NCBI GenBank assembly: GCA_000320545.1
Contig: ADNK01000420.1
Span: 1-37,965, forward strand
DNA: 37,965 bases
From: Bigelowiella natans CCMP2755
Taxonomy: Eukaryota; Protista; Cercozoa
Direction of reading: 5' to 3'
Below, one piece after another: positions 12,402 to 29,217 of the stretch. Made by a program: the position numbers and the translations under genes. Under the pieces are notes generated by a model that did not search any database, was not told the DNA's origin, and saw nothing but the letters and a program-made list of their open reading frames with translations. Positions within the stretch are counted from its first letter, which is position 1; every line of letters starts with the position of its first letter.

Positions 12402-13085
12402 CTATTCTCCAACTTGTACTTCTTCCATCACCAGCGCTGGTGCTGATTCTTCTTTGCCGTTGTTCTCATCTGCGGTCTTCCTCTCTTTTATCTTGCTGGC
12501 ATCGTTTGTCTGTTAAAAATAATACGAATGAATGTGAATAATATCGTTCAGAGACACCAACCACAGAGACCCTCTCCCCCCCCTCACTTCTCTCCATCAT
12601 CGCTCTATTATTCTCTTCTATTAATGCTCCCCTACCGACCGACCTTTGTTGTAGACGCGAGTTCTGATTCAGCGCCCTCGTTATCCCCGTCCTGATCATC
12701 CTCAGGTATCATTGACATTCTGCTCTTTGTCCTTCCTCGACTTATTCTCTCCTTGTCGCGGTCGTTCGTAGCGCCTCCTCTCCCTCCACGTCTCTCAGTG
12801 AGATCTGACGTATTGTTTCATCAATCGTGAGTTGTGTATTGGGAGGAAGGCCCGACGGATGGATTCGGCCAGAAAAGTTAGAAACAAAAGACCTAAATGA
12901 CCTTCTAGACGGACATGCTTATGTGAGTAGAGGTAGGAGGAGGAGGAGGAGGAGGAAGCTGAAAGATGCTAACCCACCACTAGCAGCAGCAGCGATCTTC
13001 TCTCCCTTCTGAGCGGAAACTTCGATGTTATCTCCATCTCCTTGGTCTACTTTTATGAAAAACAAACGAAAGCACCGAAGAGTGT

Positions 13086-13126
<41 letters not shown>

Positions 13127-13364
13127 CATTTACGTATATCATGTATCTCACCAAAAATGGCAGATGTATTCGCTCATCATCATCTTCTTCATCATCATCA
13201 TCATCATCATCATCCGCCCTCTCGTCGTCATCATCGCAGAGAACATAGAGATAGAGAGAGGTAGCGTCATGAATCATTCGCACATCGTTCTTGAGTTGTC
13301 CGAAACTTACTACCAGAAGCAGAAGAGGAGGAGGAGGAAGGAGAAGTATCAGTTGAAGAAGAAG

Positions 13365-13396
<32 letters not shown>

Positions 13397-13976
13397 GTAG
13401 TTGCAGAGGCATCGCCGTTGTGAGCTTTCTTTTGGAAATTCTCCATATTCTTTGAGATATCCTTCGCTGACAACGATGTGCCGGTGGATGATGCCTCTAC
13501 TGCTGCTGGTGCTGCTGCTGCTGATAGTGTCACTTTCTGTGCTATACCCCCCTCTATTCCTACTGTTGCATCATCAGTCTCCTGTTTCCCCGAAGACACA
13601 TCATCGGTGTGCTCAAAGTTGTCATTGGAAGAAGAAGAAGAAGAAGAAGAAGAAGAAGAAGAAGAAGAAAGCTTCGAGTTCGTCGTCACTTTGTTTTCCG
13701 TGACTGTAGTTGTCTTGCGGGCAGATTCCCCTGCTTTTTGTATTGATACAGCAGACACACGACGCACTCACGCACTCACACAAATATACAATTTGAATAA
13801 ATATCGAATTCGAAACCCATATTATGATTTCATCCATAGCCTGCATTTGATCAACTAGGCTGACAATCTTCCTCCCCCCCCCTCAACGATATACCTCTAT
13901 CACCAGCTCTATCACCCTGATGGATGGGGGTGTTGAAGACAATTCGGAAACAGCAATAACCAACAAACACTCAAGT

Positions 13977-14016
<40 letters not shown>

Positions 14017-15259
14017 CATGTATATTATCATATTGATAGAAAATGATGAAACATCGCTGATATACTACTACAAAAGAAAGGGTTGTCATTGCAAATGTTG
14101 TGATGTTATGTACACACAGTGTTACGAGAGACTTTTGCGGATGATCCACCCTCTGCCTTCCCCTCTTTTTCCATTCCCTTCGCCCCCACGTCCCCATCCT
14201 CGTTTATCTCAGTCTTAGTTTTCTTCTTCCTCGACGTCTCAGGGGGGGGAACGCTCTCTATTCCCTGATACAAATGATGTGGCAAAGCGTGGTTTTTAGC
14301 GAAAATCTCCTCTGCTTTATCTCACTGATCTCGAAACAATCGATGGGAAGCATCTGGAACCCTGCACGGCACGGCGCGCGTAAACCATGCAAGAACCATT
14401 CAGCATTCGCATCCATCTTCAAGTCGAGAGAACACCGACAATTGCTTTCTATACAATCATTCACCATACCGAACAGTCGTCCCGACTGTCACGCATAGAT
14501 TGCATGCCACGATATATGATATATGCACGCACTGAGCAGCAGTACCCCGGACAACTTGAACCCTTCGCCGTACGCCTTTCCGTTTGATAGATCATTCCAG
14601 TACCTAGCAGCAATTATTCCACGTCAGAGATGTTGCTTTTCAGTTGAACGATGTGCCATCGGAACGGAGGAGCTCCTTTACGCAGAAGGATCTAGGTTTG
14701 GATTCGTCATCGCTGAGAATGAGAACTAGACCGCGACGCATTTGCGCTGTGCCGCCGCCGCCGTACCAATGGCCACTTTTTGAGCAACTTGCGGTGTTTT
14801 CAGTGCTGCTGCTACATCTCAGGAGAGATCCTCTAGTTTGGCGTGATTTGGAAGGGGTAGGCCAAAGCATCATATCGAGGAGGAGGAGGAGGAGGAGGAG
14901 GAGGAGGAGGAGGAGGGAGAACAATAATACCCGTGAGTTTGTTTGATGACATCTGCTGCCTTGGAAGGTGGCTCGAGTTCTGTTGTTAATGCAGGAGAGT
15001 AGTCAAGAACCACAACACCATCAGTATTGTGTAGCACGGAAGTCAAAGATCTACTTGCATGCATGTGTGTGCATGTGTGCATGTGTGCGTGTGTTTGTGT
15101 GTGTTTTCAGGAGGTCGGTGTTGATCCCAGAGGCACTGCTGCTCGCACTACGAAATAGAAAGTTGCCGAAGAATGTATTAGGATATTATTTGTCCAGGAC
15201 TACAACTACTTACGTTTCTTCTCCAACTCATTCCTTTTCTTCCCCTCTGGAATCTGAAA

Positions 15260-15303
<44 letters not shown>

Positions 15304-15630
15304 ACATACGATATAGCAATTATCCAAGAAATTCTTCCATACAGAGAATACCATTGCCTCTGGAAGATTGCTTCGCTGGAGGATAATCATCATCATCGAT
15401 GCGTTTTCGAAATTCAATGTTCAGGACAATGCATCGGTTTTTTAGTACTAGTTTGTTCATTATCATCATCATCATCATCATCATTATTATCGGTTGCAGC
15501 AGAAGCAGCAATAGTAAAGGCAATTGTTCGTAGAACTTTGTAATTTATGAGCCAATCCATGAGTTTCGCTATGAGCCCCGGTCGGTGTTTTTCGAGGCTG
15601 TTTTAGTAGTAGCAGGAACAGATCAGTCAA

Positions 15631-15682
<52 letters not shown>

Positions 15683-16092
15683 GAACAAGTGATGACATAT
15701 CTCCCTCCTCCTACTCCACCTCCTCCTACTCCACCTCCTCCTCCTCCTCCTCATCCAACCTGTTCGCATCGTGGATGTTCTCCGCATCAGGAGCAGTCTT
15801 ATCGATGGCCACCAGCTTGTAGTCAAGCTGTGTGCCGCGACATATTTAGTTAGTTAGTGTGTATGTGTGAGTGTGTGTGTGTGTGTGTGTGTGTCTGCCT
15901 TGGGGGGAGGTGGAGGGGGAGGGGGAAGGGGGGGCATACTCAAAATTCGTATTGTTCTATTTGAAGAGTGATACGCAACGAAAACGATACAAACACTTGA
16001 TGATGTTGTTGCTGTTCTTGAACAAATTATCGAGGTGTATTATCAACGCATATCATCCACATGATTACCATTTCCACCACGCCACCGACGTT

Positions 16093-16124
<32 letters not shown>

Positions 16125-16554
16125 TATCTTCACCATTACCTCTCCTTGATCTATCACAGAAATCATTCCTATTATCTTCACTGCCACTACAGCACCCGTA
16201 CCGAGGACATGCCCTCTATTTACCCACAATCGCGGAGAACAACAAATAGAGTTATCGGAATCGAGAAAAACAACGAGAAGAAACAGAATATGGCAGACTC
16301 CGTTCCCTCTCTCTTTACAATCGATGTTTTCAACGCTTAAACATCAGATTTTTTTGACGCAGCTCACAAAGAATCGCTATTATATAGTAGTAGTACCCAA
16401 TCTCCAATACGTCGAGGGGATCTCCATCTCCAAAGCGACCCTTATCGTCTTGTAGGTCATCTGCCTCCCATGTTTGAGGCAAGAAACCATAGTTGAAAAA
16501 GGGAATGCCGTACCTGTGCGTGGAAATGATGTAAGTGAAAGGGAAAGGAACATT

Positions 16555-16610
<56 letters not shown>

Positions 16611-16672
16611 AGACATCGACTATTCGTGGTCATTTGCAACCGATAATCGAATGGTTCTGTGAGCGACGGCGG

Positions 16673-16703
<31 letters not shown>

Positions 16704-16981
16704 AATGACGATGACGATGACGATAATGCTAGTGGTGGAGGTGATAGCTATGGAAGAAGTGAGTTAAACGTACAGGTAATTCCTGGGGAGATTGTGCTTC
16801 TGATCATGAGCAATCGGGTTGAATGCCTGTGATTATTGTTGCTGCTGATGATGATGATGATGATGCATAGGAGGAGGAGAAGAGAGGAAAACATCGGTCG
16901 TATCCATCAAATGGCCGACATTGCAAAACATATTATCTGTATATATAATTCCTCCGTTGTTGGAGAAGGAAAAGAGCAATG

Positions 16982-17022
<41 letters not shown>

Positions 17023-17598
17023 GAGAATAATACTATACCAAATCCACGTGCTACATTTAGTATGTATATATATAGGCTGAATATATTGTTTTCACGTACG
17101 ATTTTCTTCTGCATCTCAAGCTTATCCGTACGGCCCATCGGTATCTTTGCACCAAGTAACGACAACAACAACAACAACAACAACAATTACAAACACTCTC
17201 AAATGAAATAGAATAAAGAGGGGGGGGGGCAGGGGGAAACAAGAAAAACATGAATGGTCGGTTGGTTACGATTAGTTGCAGGAATGGGTACTTTGTTGAT
17301 TATGGCCTCTTTCTTCTTCTTCTTCTTCTTCTTCTTCTTCTTCTTCTTTTATCACTACTACTACTACTACTACTACCACCATTACCACCAGATGTTAAAT
17401 TGTCCTCAAACAGCAAGCAACACACCTCTACCAACATATTGCACGAAATGATAGTGCCGCCATCTTCTTCGGAGCCTGCTCCTCCACTGCTGCCTCGTCT
17501 CTCTTCTTTGAGGTTGAGAGGAATATCGTGCCATGGGGATATCTTGTTACCGCTGATGATAAAGTCATTCGTTAATCAAGGGGCAAGGACAGATATAT

Positions 17599-17640
<42 letters not shown>

Positions 17641-18530
17641 AAGTATACGAATGCAAAAGATGACAGGTTTTTACAATAATGCTCATAATATCTTCTGTAT
17701 ATTTAATTTCAAAAAAACCGGAGGAGTAGCAGCAGCTTCCTTTTCATGTATTGCAATAGTACTACTGGTACTTGCATTTCTTCTTCGTCTTCCTCTTCTT
17801 CTTCTTCTTCCTCTTTTCCTCCTTCTTCTTTCTTATTCAATACCTTCGGTCGTTGAAATGTAACATCCAATCTGTTGTTGTTCAGTGTGATGACGTCCAA
17901 GGTAATGCAATCAAATAGTCAGTACTGCTGATGGTGACGATTGTGTACTACGAAAACGATTATGATAACGATGACACTGGCACGTTCAGTTTTTCCAATA
18001 AATTTCGAAATGATAAATTCAGTAACCGAAGATCTAAATCTATATGCTTCTTGCACCAAACATCTGATCTACTCATCAACTAATCACTTGCATCCATAAA
18101 AAGTGAGGAATGATGGAAAGACGATGCACTTCATTATCCTCCTCCTCCTCCTCCTTCTTCTTCTTTCACTCATCATAGTTGTTGTGCATTCTCTATTTGG
18201 TCAGTGTCAGCATGGCATCATAAAGCAAGTGATGATATAACAATCGTACTATGTTCATAAATAACCATACCCAGCTTGCCGAACGTGCCACTTTCCTCTA
18301 TATTGCTCGTAGCAGCAGCTAGCTTGGGAGCCCCGAGCATGCGGGAGAATGGTACCCATTCTGGTAAGTTCTGAGCAAGAAAGCAAACTATCAATACGAG
18401 GAAGAAGAAGAAGACAAAGGAGTAGTGGTAGTAGTTGATTTAAATTCAGTACGAATGCATACTTAATATAATGAGCTACAGGATATTTAAATAAATGTAC
18501 ATGGATTCTATACATATAATACATGTGCAC

Positions 18531-18574
<44 letters not shown>

Positions 18575-20040
18575 AACCGGATTCTGATAATACGCTATCA
18601 TGATGTTCCAGCCTTCCTCAACCATAAAACTGCAGCATTGCATGTATGTGGCGGATGTTGGGAGGAGGAGGAGGAGGAGGAGGAGGAGGAGGAGGAGGAG
18701 GAGGAGGAAACGACAACACATAAGTACAACAACAAAAACAATAATAATATTATTATTATTAATGATAATAATAATAATGATAACGAGACTAATTACTGTT
18801 GATTCTTTCTTGCCTGTGACATTACCATCAATACTCCATCTACCACTATTTATCACCTCCGAAATTATCTTCAACCATCATCGTCATCATCATCATCACC
18901 TTCGCATCATTATCCTCTTTAACTAGCGGCAGCTATTTTTTTTTTTCTTCTTCTTCTTCTTCTTCTTATTATTATTATCATCATCATTACTATCCCAATC
19001 ATCGTTGCTGCATTGATTCTCACCCAGATGGGACGCATGAAAGCGTATCCTCCCAATCATTCGGAATTCCTCCAACACACTCCTGAGAATAGAGAATCGA
19101 TAATCGTGATCAACAAACCGCACAAAGAGCACACAAAAGCAGCACTGGCAATAACTGTTAAGTCCAACCTTCACCCCCTTCCGAGCCATCGCTCGCATTT
19201 TTGAGCCGGATATTGACAAGAAATCCTTCAAATACAAAACAAACACACACACACACACACACGCGTGTACATATATTAGTAAACATTTTACAATGCGTTT
19301 TGTAGGCAGGTTGTACGATGTGCATTGGAAAAACAAATGCAAAGAGCAGAACGGATGATGCATCATCCACGAGCAGTACCTTTTTCCGTGAAGAGTCTCT
19401 CTTCTTCATTTTCATATCTTTCGTATCATAATACACCTGCGGTGAAGAATCAAAGGCTCATGTTCATCCGCACATGCTTGTGATAAGGCACATCATCGAC
19501 CGACAGGGCTGGTGACATCGGCAGCAGCAACAATGTAATAATATCGAGGACACCTTGCCAAAGGACAGAATTTGCATGTCACCCATGCCAGGACTTGTTT
19601 GCAGCACGTATCTAAGAAGAAGAAGAAGAAGAAGAAGAAAAGAGGAGATAACACCAAAAACAAAGTAAGGAAGAGTAAGATGATTCCAGAAGAAGAAAAA
19701 AGATGAAAAGGAGATAAAAGGGAGGAGAAACCCTGCATTCAAGATCAGAATCGGATTTAAGTAAGAGCCCCCCCCCCCCCCCCCCCTTCCCTTTTCATCA
19801 CCCGATCGGGGCCTGGTCATATAAATTTGGGTGCCCCAAAACCAACTCTACAGGATAACACAAGCGAGCTATGATTCTAGTTGACGTGTCTGTCATCTGA
19901 CGTTGCTCCAGCATTCCTCCTCGACTTGGCATGCCACTGTACTTCTGTGGGACCTGCATACATCATCGGCGAAGGCCATATTGCCAGCACCGTTGAGGCC
20001 GGTAGCATCCCCTTTTCTATCACCTAACGATACCCGGTAG

Positions 20041-20090
<50 letters not shown>

Positions 20091-20286
20091 GGTTTGATAC
20101 AGTGACTCTACTACTTTTACTACTACTGCTACTACCTGCACATGTTGTTTAATTCTCACATCCAAGGGCACATCGTCAGCCTTGCTCCAACCCCCCAAGG
20201 GTGATAGCCATAGCGTTGGTTTTCGGAATCCTTGCTTCTTTAGCCGATTTCCGGCCTCTTGCATCAAGTGGGCATGTCTGAATATG

Positions 20287-20318
<32 letters not shown>

Positions 20319-20339
20319 GGGGGGGGGGGGGGGGGATGC

Positions 20340-20374
<35 letters not shown>

Positions 20375-21526
20375 TGTTGTTGTTGTTGTAGCAGTATTAG
20401 TAGCAGTATATTCGTAAGAACGTGCCTGTATGCTCGGCAGATACTAAAAACACATTTTAGAAAATGAAGTTAGGCTGTAAGTACCCCGCATGAGTAGGAT
20501 TTCGAGTTTGGAATGCATATACAGCATCAGCGTTTCGTTGTTTGAATTTGCCTCGTAGCTCTTCCGGCGTGAGACGATATTTATCAAGCCCATCGTCATA
20601 CCTATTAGCAGTAGTAGTAGTAAGTAGTAGTAGTAAGTAGTAGTAGAAGTAGTAGTAGTAAGTAGTAGTAGTAGTGTGGTAGTAGTAATAGCACGTTACA
20701 TCCAAGAACAATTTAAAATAAAACAGTGATTTTCGAAACCAATCCGAAAGCACCGACGAGACTCCCAAGAGTAAACTATCGTCACGTTTTGATTTGTAGC
20801 TTAGTAGCCGTAGTATTTTGAGTAACATCCCGCCTCTCCCACCCTGACCTTATTCGTTCGAGCAGCTCGATTTCTCCTCCAAGAAGCCAATTGCCAGCAT
20901 GCACCCACTTCTGCATGTATCTGTCAAAGAGGAGGAAAAAGAAGAAGAAGGGAGAAGGGGGGTACAATGTCAAAGTTGGATGCACACGAAGCGTAGGCCA
21001 TCGAAGTTGTAGTATCACGATGATGATATACCGACAAGCATGATAATGATGATGATGATGATGATAATGATTACGATTCTTACTGTTATTGTTATTGTTA
21101 ATGTTAATGTTATTGTTATTACGGATGATTCTTGTCCCATCCCCCGAACACACGCGCAATCATTTCGTCCTTTCGAAATCTAATGAATCAATAAATCCTT
21201 TGTGTCACCGAGGGCATTGGGGGAAATGTGTGTGTGTGTGTGGTGCTTTTGTTGATGATAATGATCATGGAGTGATATGATGTGTCTATTCGAAATAACA
21301 CAAAGGAATTAAGAATATCGTTTCTCTCGTTTGTATATGTTGAAATACTCGTAGATTTCAGGATCTGTAAGTACAGCGATGACCTTTCCTGATAATTGGC
21401 CAATGATCGATGACACATAATAACAATAATAACATCGTGAAAGGTGAATTGCCCTGCTACTCTATATCACCATCGTCTTCGTCGTCATCATCATCATGAT
21501 TATTTTCAACAAAAGAGAAAGGCACA

Positions 21527-21563
<37 letters not shown>

Positions 21564-23122
21564 GTCGGCGCGACAAGGGCGATTTTCTTCTCCTTCGATT
21601 TGATTATTGCATCTTTTGTGTTGTCATTGATTGGGAGAACGATAGGAATCGGCATGTTCACTCGCAGTCCCATTTGCAGCTCAGTAGAGTAGTCATCAAA
21701 ATTGGTCTGTTGAAGAAAGAGAAGAAGAAGAAGAAGAAGAAGAAGAAGAAGAAGAAGATGATGATGAAAAGGAAATATAAATATCAGAAAACAAGGAAGA
21801 ATGAAATGCCTCCTAGCACATTCCAAGGGGAGAACATCCCACAGTACTGAGCACACTGAAATGTTTGTTTTCTATGAATTTCACGCGAGGTAGCCATTGC
21901 TCCCTACTCAGCCGTTGTTCCACAGCATTGCATATGCTAGTAACAATGGATTAACCACCACCATCATCATATTTCTAAAGTCTCCAGATCCTCTACACCG
22001 CACCTGCGTGGTGAGGGCGTTCTTATTGCCCGTCAAGTCGTTTGGATCTAATAGCAGAGAGTTGAAATGCAGAGTCTGTAACAAGGCCCCCTCGCGCATA
22101 AACCCTGTCAGCGGGGACGCCCACCCCTCACCTTATCACCACATCAAGAGAAAGGAGAGAGAGAAGACAGAGAAGACCAGAAAGACAAAAGGCGAGGACG
22201 AGAGCAGAACCAACATTGTATTTGTATTAGAGATGTAACGAATGAACTTGATTGGCATCGTATCTGAAAAGAAGACCCCCACTTGCAATCTACAGGAGAC
22301 CACAACTTACGGAATACACCGATGTATCTCGCTTCTACAACAAGCAGGACAGTTTGCCGTGCCGACGAGGCGCTTAACGTCGGTGTGTAGGGAACTATCA
22401 TTCGTCGTCTCCTTGCTACATGTGCACGATGAGCAAATCTCCATATTTTCAAAGATAGAGGTCAAGAAGAAGAGGTACTGCTAATACGGCTCGTTCTGAC
22501 ACCACAGCGCGTACTCAAAAGACTACACTAGCAGATACAATGCTACTACCGATGCACTGAACCCAGTTGACATCCACATTCGTAAGCAGCACTTTGGGGA
22601 ACTTCGCAGCTGCGGCTCGTGAGTAGGTTGAAAACTGCGGGGTTTTCCAGTTGAAGCCGCCGTCTGGAGGGCTCTGCAGCGGATACCACGATGGGACCTT
22701 TGCACGCCGCGGAACAACACGACAATATGACGATATCAAGCAACAATGACAAAGTCGTCATAAGAGGATGCTGGTAGTGGTGATATGGTTGCAGGTTACG
22801 GTGTATTTTTTGTCTCAAGACATCAGCAATCACAGGGTGGGGAGAGACTGCCAACGGTGCCAAATCATCCCCATCAGGACTTTTGGAACTACACGGTTCT
22901 ACTGCATGATACAGTGCCCATATGTTGTTGTTGTGAGAAGTTGCTTACGTTATAACCAACAGATACCCCACGGCTGAGAAGCGCCTGGTTACATGCAAAA
23001 GCATCACAGAAAGCCGCAACTTTATCATCGCCATTATCATCATCTATCATGATCATCGTCGTCATATCAACGGCTCTGGTGCTAGTCTTTAACTGCCCCG
23101 CAGGGTATGTTTGTGTGTTTGC

Positions 23123-23161
<39 letters not shown>

Positions 23162-23299
23162 GGTGATTACAAAGATGGTGGTGGTGGTGATGATGATAAT
23201 ACATAAAGGACGTCATCATGATCATCATATATTCCAAACCTTTCCTATCTGTATTGCAGCCTGCTCTGCTGCCTTATCATCCTACAACAGTGGTGGTGA

Positions 23300-23337
<38 letters not shown>

Positions 23338-23674
23338 CTATATCAGTGGTAGTAGCAGTAGAAGCAGTAGTAGTGGTAGTAGCAGCCGTGTTGTCTTATT
23401 TATATAATTTAACGTTCATCTGTGACACATCCTCCTCCTCCGCCGCCTCCCCCAAGATCCACGGGTTAGTTAGTGTCGACGGGATTATTGGGCATAACCT
23501 TGGCAGTGAGCATGATTGATATTTCTGGATGTGTTGGGGATTCGTATGGCTCTATCTCACCGCTACCAGTGTTTCCGATGATACCGAGTGATGACGACGA
23601 CGATGGTGATGATGATGATGATGGTACAGGACCCAAATCTACTTGAACCTTAAAAAATTAATAGAAACAGTGCG

Positions 23675-23712
<38 letters not shown>

Positions 23713-23841
23713 GAGGATGTGGCGTTATCCGTACTATACACACGGCTTGCTTGTCGCCATCGTACCTACCTCGAGAAAAGGAAGGCCTCTAACGTTGTGC
23801 GACCTGCCAAAATCCAAGCCAAGATTATTCGTTAAAAAGAG

Positions 23842-23876
<35 letters not shown>

Positions 23877-26038
23877 AGCACTCGGGCGATACGATACACA
23901 GTCGAGAGGCATTGCAATGTTGAGAAGTGTGGGAATAACACGCAGTATATTCTATCAGAACAAACAGGATCATCAACTCCCAATCTGACATGAAGAATTC
24001 ACATCTATCTCGTGCAACAACTCTGCTGCTGCTGCTATATACTGATTACCTTCGAATCCAATCCCTTGCAGCTTGCTTTGGGATGTTGAGGTTGGCGAGT
24101 ACAACTGTACCCGCATCAGTTAATACTGCGCAAAGCTCACCAGCTAAAGGAACCAAAAAACAACGAAACCGTCAAGGACTTGCGGGGGATTCATTCTGAG
24201 CATCAGGAATGAAGCGCGAACAACACCGATGACTTCTGGTACATCATTTGCCATGCTCGCGCGACGATAAATAGCCACCAAAAACAGGGAACGATGAGGA
24301 AGCCAAATAGCATATTATGGGAGGAAGGATAAGGAAAGGGGTGGAGGAATGAGTATTAGTGGTAGTAGCAGCAGCAGCAGTAATAGTAGTAGTATTAGGA
24401 GGCAGGGGCACAGTTGTAAGCACAACCTCTCCTCGTCTTCTCATTGATGGTTGATGGCGAAGATCCCAAATCAGAGTTGATGCCCTGTGATAGTAGAGAG
24501 TGCTCCAGGCGGTAGACGTTCAACCGATGCTTGCTCAGAATCCATTCCTCCAGCGCTAAAGTAATAAACAAATGTAGAAGAAGAAGAAGAAGAAGAAGAA
24601 GAGGACAGTGCCAGAAGGGTTTGACAAGATCATAGACATAAGCTAGTAATAGAAATATATACAGGGTGATACATATGATTTATGTTTGAATTATAAATTA
24701 CCTAACCCAACTTTATGCGCGAAGGCTTCATCGGAGGATACTATCATCACGGTAATGCCTGATACAACATTTGTAACCATTTTCACGTGGAAAATAGAAG
24801 AAGCGAAATGTCCAATCTATTGTCCTTCTTCGCGGCAAAATCTCGGCCATATCCTGTTACTCTCTCAGCGAGTCAAGGATGTGAGGAATTTCATATCACT
24901 ATTACGATTACTCAAGGTAATCACTTTATTCGTAACAAAACGGTGAAAATGACTAAAAATATTTTCTTAAATATCATAGAAGTATCGATGATTTTGGTGA
25001 ATGGAATCGTCATCATCGTTGTTCTCCACTCCTCGTTGCGGGAAAAGAACTAAATACTTGAACATCTTACTCAGTCATTCACCTTTCTGGGCTATGTACG
25101 CAAATCTTTTTTCACGTGACACACCGTCGTTGTGCCCGATTGCCACCTGCTCCACAAAGACGTGATGATGACGAAAACACAATAGTGACGTCATCATAAT
25201 CACACGGTGCTAATGCACGTAAGATTGTCGCAAGAGGGGAGAAAGCAGAGTAGCACGGTGCAAAGGGAGTGGGATCAATGATAAAGGGAAAGAGGATGAG
25301 CTCGAAAAGAGAATCTGCTTCTTTTGCCAGTCATACCGGTGTTGGCAGCGGTCGTTCCTGATTCTCCTTTGCGAATTCGTACAGGTAGTTTTCCGCTTTA
25401 TGAATACTATTACTGATAGCGTTTCTTAGGCTGTGCGCATCGAAGGACCCGATTCGGCTAACAACTGAGTGATCGGTTAAAGTCACTCCCCCACCCGTCC
25501 CACCGGTATCACTGCTTTCCGTCTTTGTCGTAGATGTGCGCACAAGCGGGGAGGGGGAGGAGGAGGAGGGCGCGTCGCCATCGCTGTTGGAATTGTCATC
25601 GCCATGGAGAGCATGGTTTTGTGATTTGTGGGTGGTGATGGATGATATAGCATCGAAGAGACCAGTACTCTTGCCTCCTACTCCTTCTCCTCCCTGAGCA
25701 TCATCTTCTTTCTTCGCAGTGAAGAGGAGGTAGCACAACACCCCGCATATGGCAAGTGCCAGGAGTAGCTTTGTAAGAAAAGAGAAGCCTAAAGATTGAG
25801 AGCAAGGGAAGGGGGGGAGGGAATTCTCATTGGAAGCAGTAAGACGCCTAATTCTCAAAAATACCTGATCTTCTCGCTTTGCCCCCATGAGATTTAGCCT
25901 TAGCGGGAAGAAGAGGGAGGAGGAGGGGGGAGCTTAGATTTGTAGCCACGGGAATAGTGAGAAGTATATAATACGTACCTCGCCCTCTTCCATCGAGCGC
26001 AGACTGGCAACATCGACAGATCTGAGAAAGAGACTCAT
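12402..26038 (-). CDS. Signal-anchored fusion: degenerate APS kinase + ATP sulfurylase + inorganic pyrophosphatase + acidic/Ser-rich tail (43 exons, ~1384 aa)
   Basis: 43 GT-AG exons with mutually consistent phases sum to 4155 nt (ATG 26038, stop TAG 12404-12402). ATPS motifs: [68 protein letters not shown]. PPase motifs: [60 protein letters not shown]. The APSK-like region aligns with PAPS synthase kinase domains. Tail exons (14264-12402) are less certain than the catalytic ones. Confidence 0.9.
13311..13730 (-). repeat. Coding (TCT)n microsatellites giving poly-Ser tracts in the C-terminal tail exon
   Basis: (GAA)n at ~13354-13393 and ~13628-13669 on + strand lie inside the 420-nt exon 13730-13311. 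Confidence 0.7.
14546..17871 (-). other. Family I soluble inorganic pyrophosphatase domain (eukaryotic type)
   Basis: The conserved active-site positions are present: E..K.E in [13 protein letters not shown] in PRNY, YG, DxDPxD, D....D.K, YK. Confidence 0.95.
18271..22697 (-). other. ATP sulfurylase domain (PAPSS/plant-type lineage)
   Basis: QTRN and HAGH catalytic motifs lie in exons 20601-20485 and 20277-20136. The exon expected to carry the GRD motif is not recognisable in 19612-19901. Confidence 0.95.
19768..19786. repeat. 19-nt poly-C run within the unresolved ATPS interval
   Basis: Read directly; a similar 18-nt poly-G run is at 20318-20335. Confidence 0.9.
22949..25146 (-). other. 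Degenerate (pseudo) APS kinase domain, exons 4-11
   Basis: [140 protein letters not shown]...[12 protein letters not shown]. It is colinear with APSK but lacks the P-loop, DGD and lid motifs. Confidence 0.85.
25715..25768 (-). other. Signal anchor / signal peptide h-region (residues 39-56) of the fusion protein
   Basis: [18 protein letters not shown] is preceded by basic GKARRS..TK and followed by acidic [11 protein letters not shown]. Exons 26038-25979, 25898-25865 and 25788-25337 join in phase. Confidence 0.8.
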
Positions 26039-26765
26039 TGTGAATTGTTTGCCATCAAGTGTAGCATTCCCGCGATGGACGTCAATACTTGTTTTTCGGG
26101 GGACTAGAAAGGCTTCATTGGTTTGGAGTAATTACTCTCTCTCTCTACCACCTCTTCTTCTGCGAGGCTCTCTGCATTGAATGGCCTGGAGCAGCTCCAA
26201 GGAGCGTGTTTCTTCACTGCTGGGTTTTGAGGCCTACAGGCAGGCGACGGGGTCGATCGAGCAGCAGCAGCCACTGAAATGGAAACCGGCGGTCACTTTC
26301 GAAGAGAATACGTTTTACGTCTATTTTTTGTGCGGAATATATCTAAGATATCACTGACCAACCTCACTTGTGTGATGATCAAAACAGTAGCGCGGAAGAG
26401 CGACGGGAGGCTGTGGATCAGTGACCAACTTCTTCTCGAGCAGGACACTGATAAAAAATGAACAGGCGATTTTTGTCATATATGGTGTTGGTTTTCGTAT
26501 GACGACAATAAAATTTCGTGTCGTCATATAAATTAGAACGGAGTTCGCATTCTTCGTACACCACATCCAATCCGCGGGAAATGGCGGAGAGCAGCCGCGG
26601 TGAGCCTGATCTTGAATCAATCCCTAGGCTTTTCAAATCTTGCATGCTTTCGCCCCTCGTCGCGTTCCCATGTCATTTTTGTGCCTCCTGGCCTAGGCAA
26701 CGTGGGACAGATTTCAGTATCAACATCCACCTAGAAATCAATCTCAACGGCATCCTAACAAAAAA
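26039..26765. promoter_or_regulatory. Divergent promoter region between the ATPS fusion gene and NUP85
   Basis: Head-to-head ATGs at 26038 (-) and 26766 (+), 727 bp apart. Confidence 0.6.
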
Positions 26766-29217
26766 ATGTCTGCAATTGTTATGGTATCAGTAGACCAAAA
26801 GGAGGAGTTGGAGGAGGGGCAAATAAATGACCAAAGGAGAGATCCCGAAATTTTCAAAACAAGCGCTCCCTTACACGCAACTTGGGGCTATGGAAACGAG
26901 ATTTTGTTGCATGGTAAGATACAGGACCGCAGCAATTCGAGAAGAAGGAAGGCGCGCGGAAACGGCAGCATATATCCCAGAAAACTAGAACGTGAGGTTG
27001 GTCAGAGTTGTAAAGTTGAAGGACTTCGGCCACTTCTCCTCGGATGGCACAGCATATTTTCAGACACCCAGAAAAGTCGTAGGCATGCAGACCAAAAGAA
27101 AATGGGCTTGAATAGCATCGCTGAGAGCAGTAGAAATTATCGTTCTGAACTTCAGAGCTTCATCGAGAAACGTTGCAGATTAGATAATAGGCCGGGTGGT
27201 GACGAAGAAAAGGCTCAAATAATCTTGGCGAATATACACATAATATGGCATCTCATCGAAATTTTCTATCTCGATGTGCATAGCAACGTCACTGGCCAAA
27301 TGCTGGGCTGGTTGCATCAGTCATCACCTGAGCAAGATGACGACTTTGATGGTGATATGAAAGAAGGCGACGCTAACTGGTGGCGGCGGGTCGGAGAAAA
27401 GGTTCTTCAAGGGAGAATACCAGCTGCAGTTGACATGCTGATGAATTATGCAGCTTTAGAGAGCATGATGGAAGAGAGGGACGAGCTCATTCAGCTCTTA
27501 GAGAGTAACCCGTGTATGGTAGGTGATAATAGAGACACTGCCGATTTCATCGAGGATTATAATGCATGGAAAAAGGCTGTTGAATCATGGATGAGGAAGC
27601 AGGCCGAACACCTAGATGGCGGGATCTTAGAAAAGATGGTGGACATCGCTGAAATCCTTCTTGGAGACCCGCATACCCTTTACTCTTACTCTACAAACGA
27701 TCACGAATTCTTCGTCGCTCACTTATTATATCAAACGCCGGAAATTGGGCGTGATGACTTACAGGTGGTGGCCAGCAACTGCTATTCTGTGGAGTACAAG
27801 CGGACATACGGGGAGGAGGGAAACCAGGAAGAGCAGGGGCTGCTACAGAAATGCATCATCGAGATCATCCGAGGAAACCTGTACGACGCAATAATGATTT
27901 GCTTGCAGATCTTTGACTCGCCATGGTTCATCGCCCACCTCGTAGATTTATTGCATCATGCAGGCTGCTTAAGGGAGACGCTTCCATTCGATGATGATAA
28001 GAGCATCAGGCAGTTTTGCCTCTTGGAGTATGGCAGGGGACTGATCAGCGATCCTTCTATTTGGCACCTGAGCCTTGCATACTTCTCCGAGTGTGGGGTA
28101 AGAGGCCGCGCACACGTGAGAGGGCTGCTAGAGTCCCAGCCGATCCCGTCCATTCGTGTGGCGAATAAGCTCATGAACCTCTGTCGCAAGTACAAGATCC
28201 CCCAGGATCTCATGACCATTATCATCAACCGTATGGGGTTCAGGGCAATGAAGCAAGGGAGGTTGGGAGAGGCGATTATGTGGTTCGCCAGGTCAGAGGA
28301 GGAGGAGCTACTATTGAGGCTTGCAACTCGCTCAGCCGTGCAGATGTTAAGGAGGAGGGAGGCCGGAGATGAGGGTCTTTATAATTCTCCAATATCGATT
28401 GCCATGCCGTCTGATGAGAAAAGCCCTGTTGGATCTGCTGTCGTGCTCGTGGAGACCGTGCGCGATTTCAGTAAACTCCGAGCTTCGATTGAAACACTGG
28501 TGGAAACATTGCTGCAGAAGGAAGCTAAGGACAAGATTCAGATGGGCAACAAGAACAATTCCCAACCTAGGAGTGATAGTGAGCAGAGAGGTGCAATCGT
28601 TAAGAAACTTGCAAAATTACAGGCAGAGGCTATATCTTCTACGTTGAAGCTACTCAAAAAGGGGGTTGGCAGCAATGAATGCCAACTTCTAATTCTATTC
28701 GAGTGTGCGCGCATCGTTGACTATGGGAAGTTCCATAACATAAGCATTGTATCTTCTCCAAAGGATATCATGACTCTCATGTCGCACCTGGAAGGGCTCT
28801 CCTCAAAGCCTAATGTGAATGCCAAAAACGGCAAATGTGAAGATGATAAGGTCGTTGGATCATCATCAATCTGACCTAGTGTTTTACCTTGCATCGTTGA
28901 TTCCTCCTTACTTCATTCAGCAGTCATACTTCACCCTTACAATCTGATCGTTGGTTCCTCTGTATCTTAGAAATTTGCGGCCATGAGAATGGCCTTATCC
29001 AAAGGAGTTGCCAGGGCTGTTGTTCTGGACGCGAAGAGGCGCAGAAACGAGCCCGGTGGAGAGGAGAATCATCAGGTAAGGCGCAAACTGGCTGCCGCCA
29101 AAATGTTCGTTTTCCCGAAATCAAAGTAACCTCTCATGACTCTTGTCTTTTCTACAGCCACGAAGAATCATCATGGCACCAGACTTGCAAAAGTTTGCAA
29201 ATTTAGATCGGATATGA
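26766..29217 (+). CDS. NUP85: Nucleoporin Nup85 (Y-complex); exons 26766-28850, 28971-29075, 29158-29217
   Basis: Family-typical motifs IIWHLIEIFYL, NWWRRVGEKVLQGRIPAAVDML, EILLGD, FFVAHLLYQTP, PWFIAHLVDLLHHAG, RQFCLLEYGRGLISDPSIWHLSLAYFSECG. The spliced exon 2 supplies the terminal MRMALSKGVARA helix. Confidence 0.9.

Follow-up and report, generated by a model that had tools for sequence, protein, structure and literature searches.

The minus strand of contig ADNK01000420.1 from Bigelowiella natans CCMP2755, whose full 37,965 nucleotides (nt) are referred to here as the window, carries at 26177-14106 a real, intron-rich gene, which is a divergent, chlorarachniophyte-specific paralogue of the known fusion of adenosine 5'-phosphosulfate (APS) kinase (APSK), ATP sulfurylase (ATPS) and inorganic pyrophosphatase (PPase). 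In the curated spliced model, the gene consists of 39 exons (3576 nt, 1191 codons) forming one intact open reading frame (ORF), which encodes in order an N-terminal tail, a transmembrane (TM) helix, a stem, a degenerate APSK, PUA_2 plus ATPS, a family I PPase and a short tail. We propose, with belief and doubt about equally weighted, that the product is a membrane-tethered pseudoenzyme in B. natans that would still possess a competent PPase, would not synthesize 3'-phosphoadenosine 5'-phosphosulfate (PAPS) and probably not APS either, and would serve as a partner of its kinase-intact paralogues.

A single-frame fusion with a degenerate kinase domain

An earlier note on this DNA had placed a TM helix, a stem, an APSK-like domain, ATPS and PPase in one polypeptide. 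This holds in that one open frame links them here, and the same order is present in two orthologues, the P0043 transcript and, in Amorphochlora amoebiformis, the P0026 gene. P0043 is a complete 1285-residue ORF on a 4062-nt MMETSP transcript contig, and it carries in one frame the N-tail, a TM helix, the stem, a weak APS_kinase match (29 bits), PUA_2, ATP-sulfurylase and a weak Pyrophosphatase match; P0026 has the same order. The gene model in the window aligns end to end with both orthologues and with P0001, a kinase-intact paralogue, and contains the domain order of the triple fusion. Even the stop-to-stop translation of the minus strand yields sulfurylase and pyrophosphatase peptides as short pieces, and a six-frame Pfam search of the genome returned ATP-sulfurylase, PUA_2 and Pyrophosphatase matches at 22132-19901 and 16503-16387, where the earlier note had located them. 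All Pfam matches for this gene refer to single exons or to six-frame translation, the joined protein having been used in local scripts only.

The region between the stem and the sulfurylase (23499-25146) gave no match to Pfam APS_kinase (PF01583), either exon by exon or in six frames, while the orthologues score 29-37 bits and the paralogue 216 bits. A local hidden Markov model (HMM) built from 114 canonical APSK domains of the family matched residues 203-359 with 85 bits (E 2.6e-28), and the best scoring shuffle reached 3.5 bits. The region is therefore a true APSK homologue. We then scored 29 APSK sites, most of which are 97-100% conserved in 114-118 canonical members. Only 5/29 match the canonical consensus in the B. 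natans protein, as compared with 5/29 in P0043 and 7/29 in P0026. The replaced sites include the Walker A P-loop GxxGxGK[ST], the DGDN motif, the lid KGLYK, FTG and the APS-contacting Arg, Phe and Asp-Arg positions. Relics of the P-loop and of DGDN can be located at 24741-24712 and 24508-24491 on the minus strand, respectively; the relics include [15 protein letters not shown] for the P-loop and LEHSL, and Ser residues abound in the lid. These motif states agree with the suggestion in the earlier note that kinase activity has been lost, and the predicted pseudokinase state is common to the whole clade of three orthologues. As most of the residues contacting APS and PAPS have been replaced, a role of the module as a nucleotide sensor is unlikely.

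A scrambled substrate-binding loop in the sulfurylase domain

The sulfurylase part is far better preserved. Exons of the PUA_2 region are 54-83% identical per exon to the orthologues and the paralogue, PF01747 matches exons 18, 19 and 20, and identity to the two orthologues is 63-100% in exons 18-20 and 22-24. Motifs QTRNP/HxxH (20510-20274) and GxxKxxD (20192-20172) are intact and identical to the family consensus; SGxxMR and the pyrophosphate (PPi)-site motifs are intact as well. Of 19 invariant ATPS sites, 15 are kept, and all four losses fall within the GRD loop; both orthologues keep 19/19.

The losses are confined to exon 21 (19845-19732), which has no Pfam match and is only 19% identical to the orthologues, while its immediate neighbours are 89-92% identical. 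The corresponding exon in the family encodes a strand and loop, FFITGRDPAG, whose six loop positions show 100% conservation in 118 relatives, except for the Pro with 98%. The enzyme touches the ribose and sulfate of APS through this loop, described as strictly conserved (PMC3779200). By pairwise alignment and codon reading, exon 21 reads ..[13 protein letters not shown](G)n SY.., with TRPRSG in place of GRDPAG. The exon opens in the ancestral frame (WF for FF and MT for IT); one extra base then turns GRDP into RPRS, and beyond a 19-nt poly-G run (19786-19768), by the SY that is equivalent to FY, the ancestral frame is back. The frame of exon 21 that best retains ancestral codons gives G-P-D and contains a TGA stop, and when the frameshift is removed by eye, the loop Arg still reads Pro. 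Neither GRDP nor GRDxAG occurs in any frame of the gene region, and no second haplotype or copy of this stretch was found in the genome. Both junctions of exon 21 are in phase 2, and an mRNA without it would likewise stay in frame. The poly-G tract just downstream of the frameshift is prone to slippage and may have restored the frame.

On this reading of its codons, exon 21 appears to be a compensated frameshift that removed the substrate-binding loop within an open frame under selection. Because several changes rather than one are present, we judge the lesion to be very probably real and not an assembly error. These results bear directly on the idea in the earlier note that the protein makes APS rather than PAPS: with the kinase predicted to be dead, no PAPS would be expected, but APS synthesis has become doubtful with GRDPAG changed to TRPRSG. 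An active ATPS plus PPase on a membrane anchor, forming APS instead of PAPS in a lumen, would fit the confirmed domain order and dead kinase, the intact RNP, HxxH, GxxKxxD and PPi-site motifs and the complete set of PPase residues, the ancestor of the clade probably did work in this way, and both orthologues keep every invariant ATPS site. We nevertheless consider such an enzyme distinctly unlikely in B. natans, as a loop that is invariant or nearly so in 118 relatives, and that holds the ribose and sulfate of the product, is encoded in no frame here. An APS-forming function fits the two orthologues better, but there the PPase active site has been lost.

A complete pyrophosphatase site and complementary decay

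The PPase domain has the opposite history. PF00719 matches exon 32 with 32.5 bits, and when residues were mapped onto solved eukaryotic PPases, 13/13 catalytic and metal-binding residues, each 100% invariant in 116-118 canonical members, were found to be kept. We take these 13 sites to be, in yeast numbering, E48, K56, E58, R78, Y93, D115, D117, D120, D147, D152, K154, Y192 and K193. Orthologues P0043 and P0026 keep only 4/13 each, and P0026 lacks Asp117, the general base of the reaction (PMC11210485).

Motif losses are thus complementary among the three proteins: the kinase in all three, the PPase in P0043 and P0026, and the ATPS loop in B. natans. In the B. natans copy the three active sites stand at 5/29 (APSK), 15/19 (ATPS) and 13/13 (PPase), so that it does not belong among fusions with all three sites intact. 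The chlorarachniophyte pseudokinase paralogue, being under clear constraint and having lost different modules in different genera, provides a natural experiment on how multi-domain pseudoenzymes are retained.

Phylogeny and paralogues

In a tree of 32 proteins (991 columns, exon 21 masked), the B. natans protein, P0043 and P0026 grouped together (SH-aLRT, the Shimodaira-Hasegawa-like approximate likelihood ratio test, 100) at the end of a long stem, with the canonical chlorarachniophyte clade (100) as their sister group. It follows from this placement that the pseudokinase clade arose by duplication inside the chlorarachniophytes. The end branch of B. natans measures 0.44, as compared with 0.54 and 0.61 for the orthologues, which have a further 0.20 in common.

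Two kinase-intact paralogues are present in the B. natans genome, one on contig C3717 at 3563-6814 (locus L028, 3 exons) and the other on contig C2974 at 6107-3111 (locus L027, 2 exons). The C3717 product is 100% identical to P0001, that is, Bigna1/51478 (EP00466_Bigelowiella_natans), and P0002 (Bigna1/36346) is a further fusion copy from B. natans. Intron density differs sharply, with 2-3 exons in the paralogues versus 39 in the pseudokinase copy and 49 in its Amorphochlora orthologue. The earlier note had called for a check for a second, kinase-intact cytosolic copy. Kinase-intact copies do exist, but both are membrane-anchored and none is soluble and cytosolic: a six-frame Pfam search of the 91.4-Mb assembly found these two anchored fusions as APS_kinase loci and no others, so that a soluble, cytosolic copy with an intact kinase is missing from the genome. 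Prospective users of PAPS are present there, with at least 14 sulfotransferase loci. A third ATP sulfurylase locus, also intron-rich, lies on contig C2978 (C2978:5467-8310, locus L029); it has PUA_2 and ATPS with no kinase or PPase matches, and is probably the assimilatory, plastid-type enzyme.

Searches for a transcript or protein of the locus

No transcript or predicted protein of the locus was found among about 15 billion proteins or in JGI contigs, although contig collections may omit records of or near this genome, which makes the transcript negatives weak. The canonical paralogue, by contrast, has a full-length transcript. The N-terminal exon, compared with 1.84 billion representative proteins, gave two low-complexity chance matches and nothing else. 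A search with residues 120-400 of P0043 recovered the two orthologues, canonical relatives (with three chlorarachniophyte copies, both B. natans paralogues among them) and a weak P0121, and one with residues 560-800 recovered fragments of 133-422 residues at identities of no more than 68%; neither search yielded a product of this locus. None of the stored proteins exceeded 92.5% identity to the gene in the window. Exact matching of two 32-33-mers, taken from exons 20 and 4, gave nothing in the JGI contigs, where records near this genome are possibly omitted. The B. natans gene thus appears to be without a full-length model in the protein collections searched.

Together with a frameshift within a catalytic exon, the missing protein and transcript contig, set against a paralogue whose transcript is present, could mean that the copy is a recently inactivated relic that is not or only weakly expressed, i.e., a unitary pseudogene in the making, with the function persisting only in other chlorarachniophytes. 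We regard this as unlikely. All 38 introns are intact GT-AG introns around an uninterrupted frame of 1191 codons, the frame was restored inside exon 21 itself, the exons flanking it are highly similar to those of the orthologues, and every PPase residue has been kept though the same residues decayed in the sister lineage. The shorter end branch of the B. natans copy likewise argues against long neutral decay, and the collections searched may simply omit records of this genome.

A family-wide membrane anchor and its probable topology

The TM helix of the B. natans protein (residues 38-59, 25715-25780 on the minus strand) was recognized by hydropathy and flank charge, with a best 19-residue Kyte-Doolittle mean of 2.33 and net charges of +3 on its N-flank and -2 on its C-flank. 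By heuristic rules, the sequence has the traits of a type II signal anchor: one helix of about 20 residues, a positive N-side and no cleavable signal at the extreme N-terminus. The stem (residues 60-185, 25337-25714), assigned by its Ser/Thr- and acid-rich composition and having no Pfam match, comprises 126 residues, including 17 D+E, 11 K+R and 32 S+T. It ends in a conserved segment specific to the clade (residues 150-173, 25444-25373), for which P0043 and P0026 are the only proteins that align. Over the first 23 residues, identity to Amorphochlora is 22/23, as compared with about 16-20% in the stem, and a conserved signal for sorting or regulation may reside in the cytosolic tail.

The earlier note had proposed that this copy gained a secretory-pathway leader. 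This proved not to be the case, as both kinase-intact B. natans paralogues also start with a tail plus a TM helix, and 84 of 112 family members that start with Met have a hydrophobic segment (at least 1.8) ahead of the P-loop, with a median position of 39. The same hydrophobicity occurs anywhere in the enzyme body of about 900 residues in only 12 of 115 members. Anchored members span the oomycetes, which lack plastids, the ochrophytes and the haptophytes, and the anchor is, as judged from this distribution, ancestral to the family. K+R is higher on the N-flank of the helix in 64 of 79 informative members, and YxxPhi, usually followed by acidic residues, occurs in the first 20 residues of 65 of 77 members, where shuffles would give 8.3. 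With this positive-inside bias and YxxPhi tail, the lumenal orientation suggested earlier is plausible, and we favour a topology in which the N-terminus would be cytosolic and the body would face the lumen.

In the entire protein of 1191 residues there is no N-x-S/T sequon, against 7.5 expected, and 0/300 shuffles had a count as low. The canonical chlorarachniophyte copies have 0-1 sequons versus 3-4 expected, and the whole family has 0.73 of the expected number. Such depletion may stem from contact with the glycosylation machinery.

The leader could alternatively produce no lumen-facing type II protein at all, acting either as a tether on the cytosolic face or as the signal part of a bipartite leader for the periplastid compartment (PPC) or plastid. 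ATP and sulfate are plentiful in the cytosol, the stem is acidic, published reviews call the fusion cytosolic (PMC4220642), and a possible signal peptide or signal-plus-transit-like leader has been suggested for the Thalassiosira pseudonana fusion (PMC2275785). However, the anchor is shared by plastid-less oomycetes, the helix, at about 22 residues, has the length of an anchor rather than of a signal peptide, and the charge bias and conserved YxxPhi would put the N-terminus in the cytosol. By heuristic rules, moreover, the sequence does not have the form of a chlorarachniophyte bipartite plastid/PPC leader, since its helix begins only at residue 38, behind a tail nearly identical between genera. 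A leader of either kind therefore seems very unlikely to us. We found no description of a membrane-anchored form of the fusion in the literature, Bradley et al. 2009 lying outside this comparison.

Proposed role of the B. natans protein

From the gene structure, homology, motif states, phylogeny and family-wide anchors described above, we infer a topology, a set of activity states and a partnership for this protein. It would be a type II protein in which a short basic tail precedes a single signal-anchor helix and a stem of low complexity, placing the enzyme body in a secretory or endosomal lumen. The kinase module had already become a pseudokinase before the three known orthologues diverged, and in B. 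natans the sulfurylase appears additionally to have lost its GRD loop by a frameshift compensated in the same exon. PAPS synthesis would most likely be impossible for such a protein, and APS synthesis probably as well, leaving the PPase as the only competent catalytic module, with the kinase-like and sulfurylase-like modules possibly serving as scaffold or structural partner. The protein may work beside the two anchored paralogues (C2974 and C3717), or in mixed oligomers with them, helping to pull their sulfurylase reaction.

Several points weigh against the proposal that the protein is a PPase-competent pseudoenzyme partner. The canonical paralogues already own a PPase domain, which leaves the need for an extra one unexplained. 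The other active-site motifs of the ATPS are perfectly kept, which is odd for a long-dead sulfurylase, and the lesion could be recent, strain-specific or tolerated. The predicted topology is drawn from sequence rules only, and the searches for a transcript or predicted protein, reported above, were negative.

Gene structure and neighbourhood

The gene model was built with a custom protein-guided spliced aligner with affine gaps, and the 5' end and a few junctions were curated by hand. P0043 (the complete MMETSP product), P0026 (Amorphochlora) and P0001 (the kinase-intact paralogue) served as guides, and the core exons (25146-16140) were identical under all three. As a control, the aligner recovered 1112/1112 residues of the annotated Amorphochlora protein P0026 in 49 exons. 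The 43 exons and 4155 nt given in the earlier note are reduced in the curated model, and 14 of the 38 introns match the Amorphochlora gene in position and phase, including intron 20 and the last two (37 and 38).

All features below are on the minus strand. Exon 1 (26152-26177) contains the ATG (26177-26175) and the first 8.7 codons (MQRASQKK-), with 9/9 identity to the N-terminus of P0026 and a GT donor at 26151. Exons 2 (26021-25979) and 3 (25898-25865) encode the rest of a K/R-rich, cytosolic-type N-tail of 37 residues (together 25865-26021); exon 3 is less certain, having been placed by splice sites, phase and spacing similar to that in the orthologues. As exons 1 and 2 (23 residues) account for the match to the Amorphochlora N-terminus, the start is probably the ATG at 26177, and not at 26038 as had been supposed. 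Exon 4 (25788-25337) includes the TM helix and stem. The degenerate kinase, defined by the family HMM, occupies exons 5-10 (25146-25083, 24758-24702, 24555-24427, 24143-24050, 23803-23770 and 23648-23499), and exon 11 (22949-23092) is a linker between it and the sulfurylase; its acceptor could alternatively be at 23086, and no other in-frame acceptors open into exon 12.

The PUA_2-like N-domain of the ATPS (20849-22697), identified by PUA_2 matches, is encoded by exons 12-17 (22697-22550, 22131-22004, 21706-21562, 21388-21349, 21179-21123 and 20920-20849), and the catalytic domain (18578-20601), identified by PF01747, by exons 18-26 (20601-20485, 20277-20136, 20023-19902, 19845-19732, 19611-19554, 19436-19380, 19225-19169, 19082-19024 and 18629-18578). 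A linker and the family I PPase (14546-18370), identified by PF00719, follow in exons 27-38 (18370-18271, 17871-17844, 17552-17426, 17144-17100, 16826-16774, 16513-16397, 16215-16140, 15827-15760, 15597-15537, 15253-15214, 14979-14931 and 14603-14546), with exons 36-37 supported by the paralogue guide alone. Exon 39 (14106-14264), next to the introns 37 and 38 shared with Amorphochlora, carries a K/E-rich tail and the TAA stop (14108-14106), and the homologous last exon of the Amorphochlora gene likewise contains the stop.

Beyond this stop, at 12402-14105, the earlier note had placed a long tail, which must be regarded as putative. The region down to 12402 has no significant similarity to the tail of P0043, and codon usage there is mixed: it is intron-like in a Ser-rich ORF of 166 residues (13767-13270) and exon-like in the ORF pieces at 12817-12635 and 12512-12405, all on the minus strand. 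The pieces within 12817-12405 could be tail exons of the gene or belong to an unmodelled neighbouring gene.

Small introns are numerous in B. natans, a chlorarachniophyte alga, and those in the window are rich in microsatellites ((CA)n, (TC)n, (TA)n and triplet runs), e.g., at 23200-23100, 21560-21520, 18600-18560 and 17000-16940, and these yield long spurious ORFs on both strands. A single-exon ORF of 702 residues for the nucleoporin Nup85 (PF07575, 257 bits) lies at 26766-28874 on the plus strand, head to head with the fusion gene and 589 base pairs from its ATG. This divergent gene bounds the 5' end of the fusion gene, and the two probably share a promoter region.

Comparison with known systems

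To our knowledge, the triple fusion is a textbook pathway fusion that still lacks biochemical characterisation and is taken to be cytosolic. It was described from stramenopiles and haptophytes (Patron et al. 2008, PMC2275785). The gene in the window shares with it the domain order, the N-terminal anchor, PUA_2/ATPS and the family I PPase, with about 60% ATPS identity and a sister-clade position, and differs in its degenerate kinase, its scrambled GRD loop, a longer stem with a clade-specific segment, a K/E-rich tail and its 39 exons.

Extending the argument to the whole family, we suggest only tentatively, and with more doubt than belief, that its members would be type II membrane proteins with a YxxPhi-acidic sorting tail and a lumenal enzyme body, activating sulfate in the lumen beside the sulfotransferases without PAPS import. 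The PPase would then be fused because the lumen has no soluble PPase, and the chlorarachniophytes would have added a pseudoenzyme partner with lineage-complementary decay. If the enzyme body is indeed lumenal, the compartment of PAPS synthesis changes for several major algal and oomycete groups, and the PPase fusion is explained.

Type II Golgi sulfotransferases and glycosyltransferases (e.g., TPST1) have a layout like that predicted for our protein, namely a basic tail, signal anchor, stem and globular body, without homology to it. Among solved structures, human PAPSS1 and eukaryotic family I PPases come closest. PAPSS1 (PDB 1X6V) shares the order of APSK followed by ATPS, and the canonical paralogue aligns with it over both domains with 535 bits, including GRDPAG; PAPSS differs in being soluble (cytosol or nucleus), in having no PPase domain and in having both domains active.

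The kinase-like domain of fungal ATPS has a regulatory role (see the references in PMC3734648). The ATPS of Penicillium chrysogenum (PDB 1I2D/1M8P), which also turned up among the solved relatives, is a precedent for a catalytically dead APSK-like module kept beside an ATPS, but there the dead domain sits at the C-terminus of a soluble enzyme, with PAPS as its allosteric effector. Descent and domain order make the locus in the window a member of the triple-fusion family, and what is new in it is its pseudoenzyme state.

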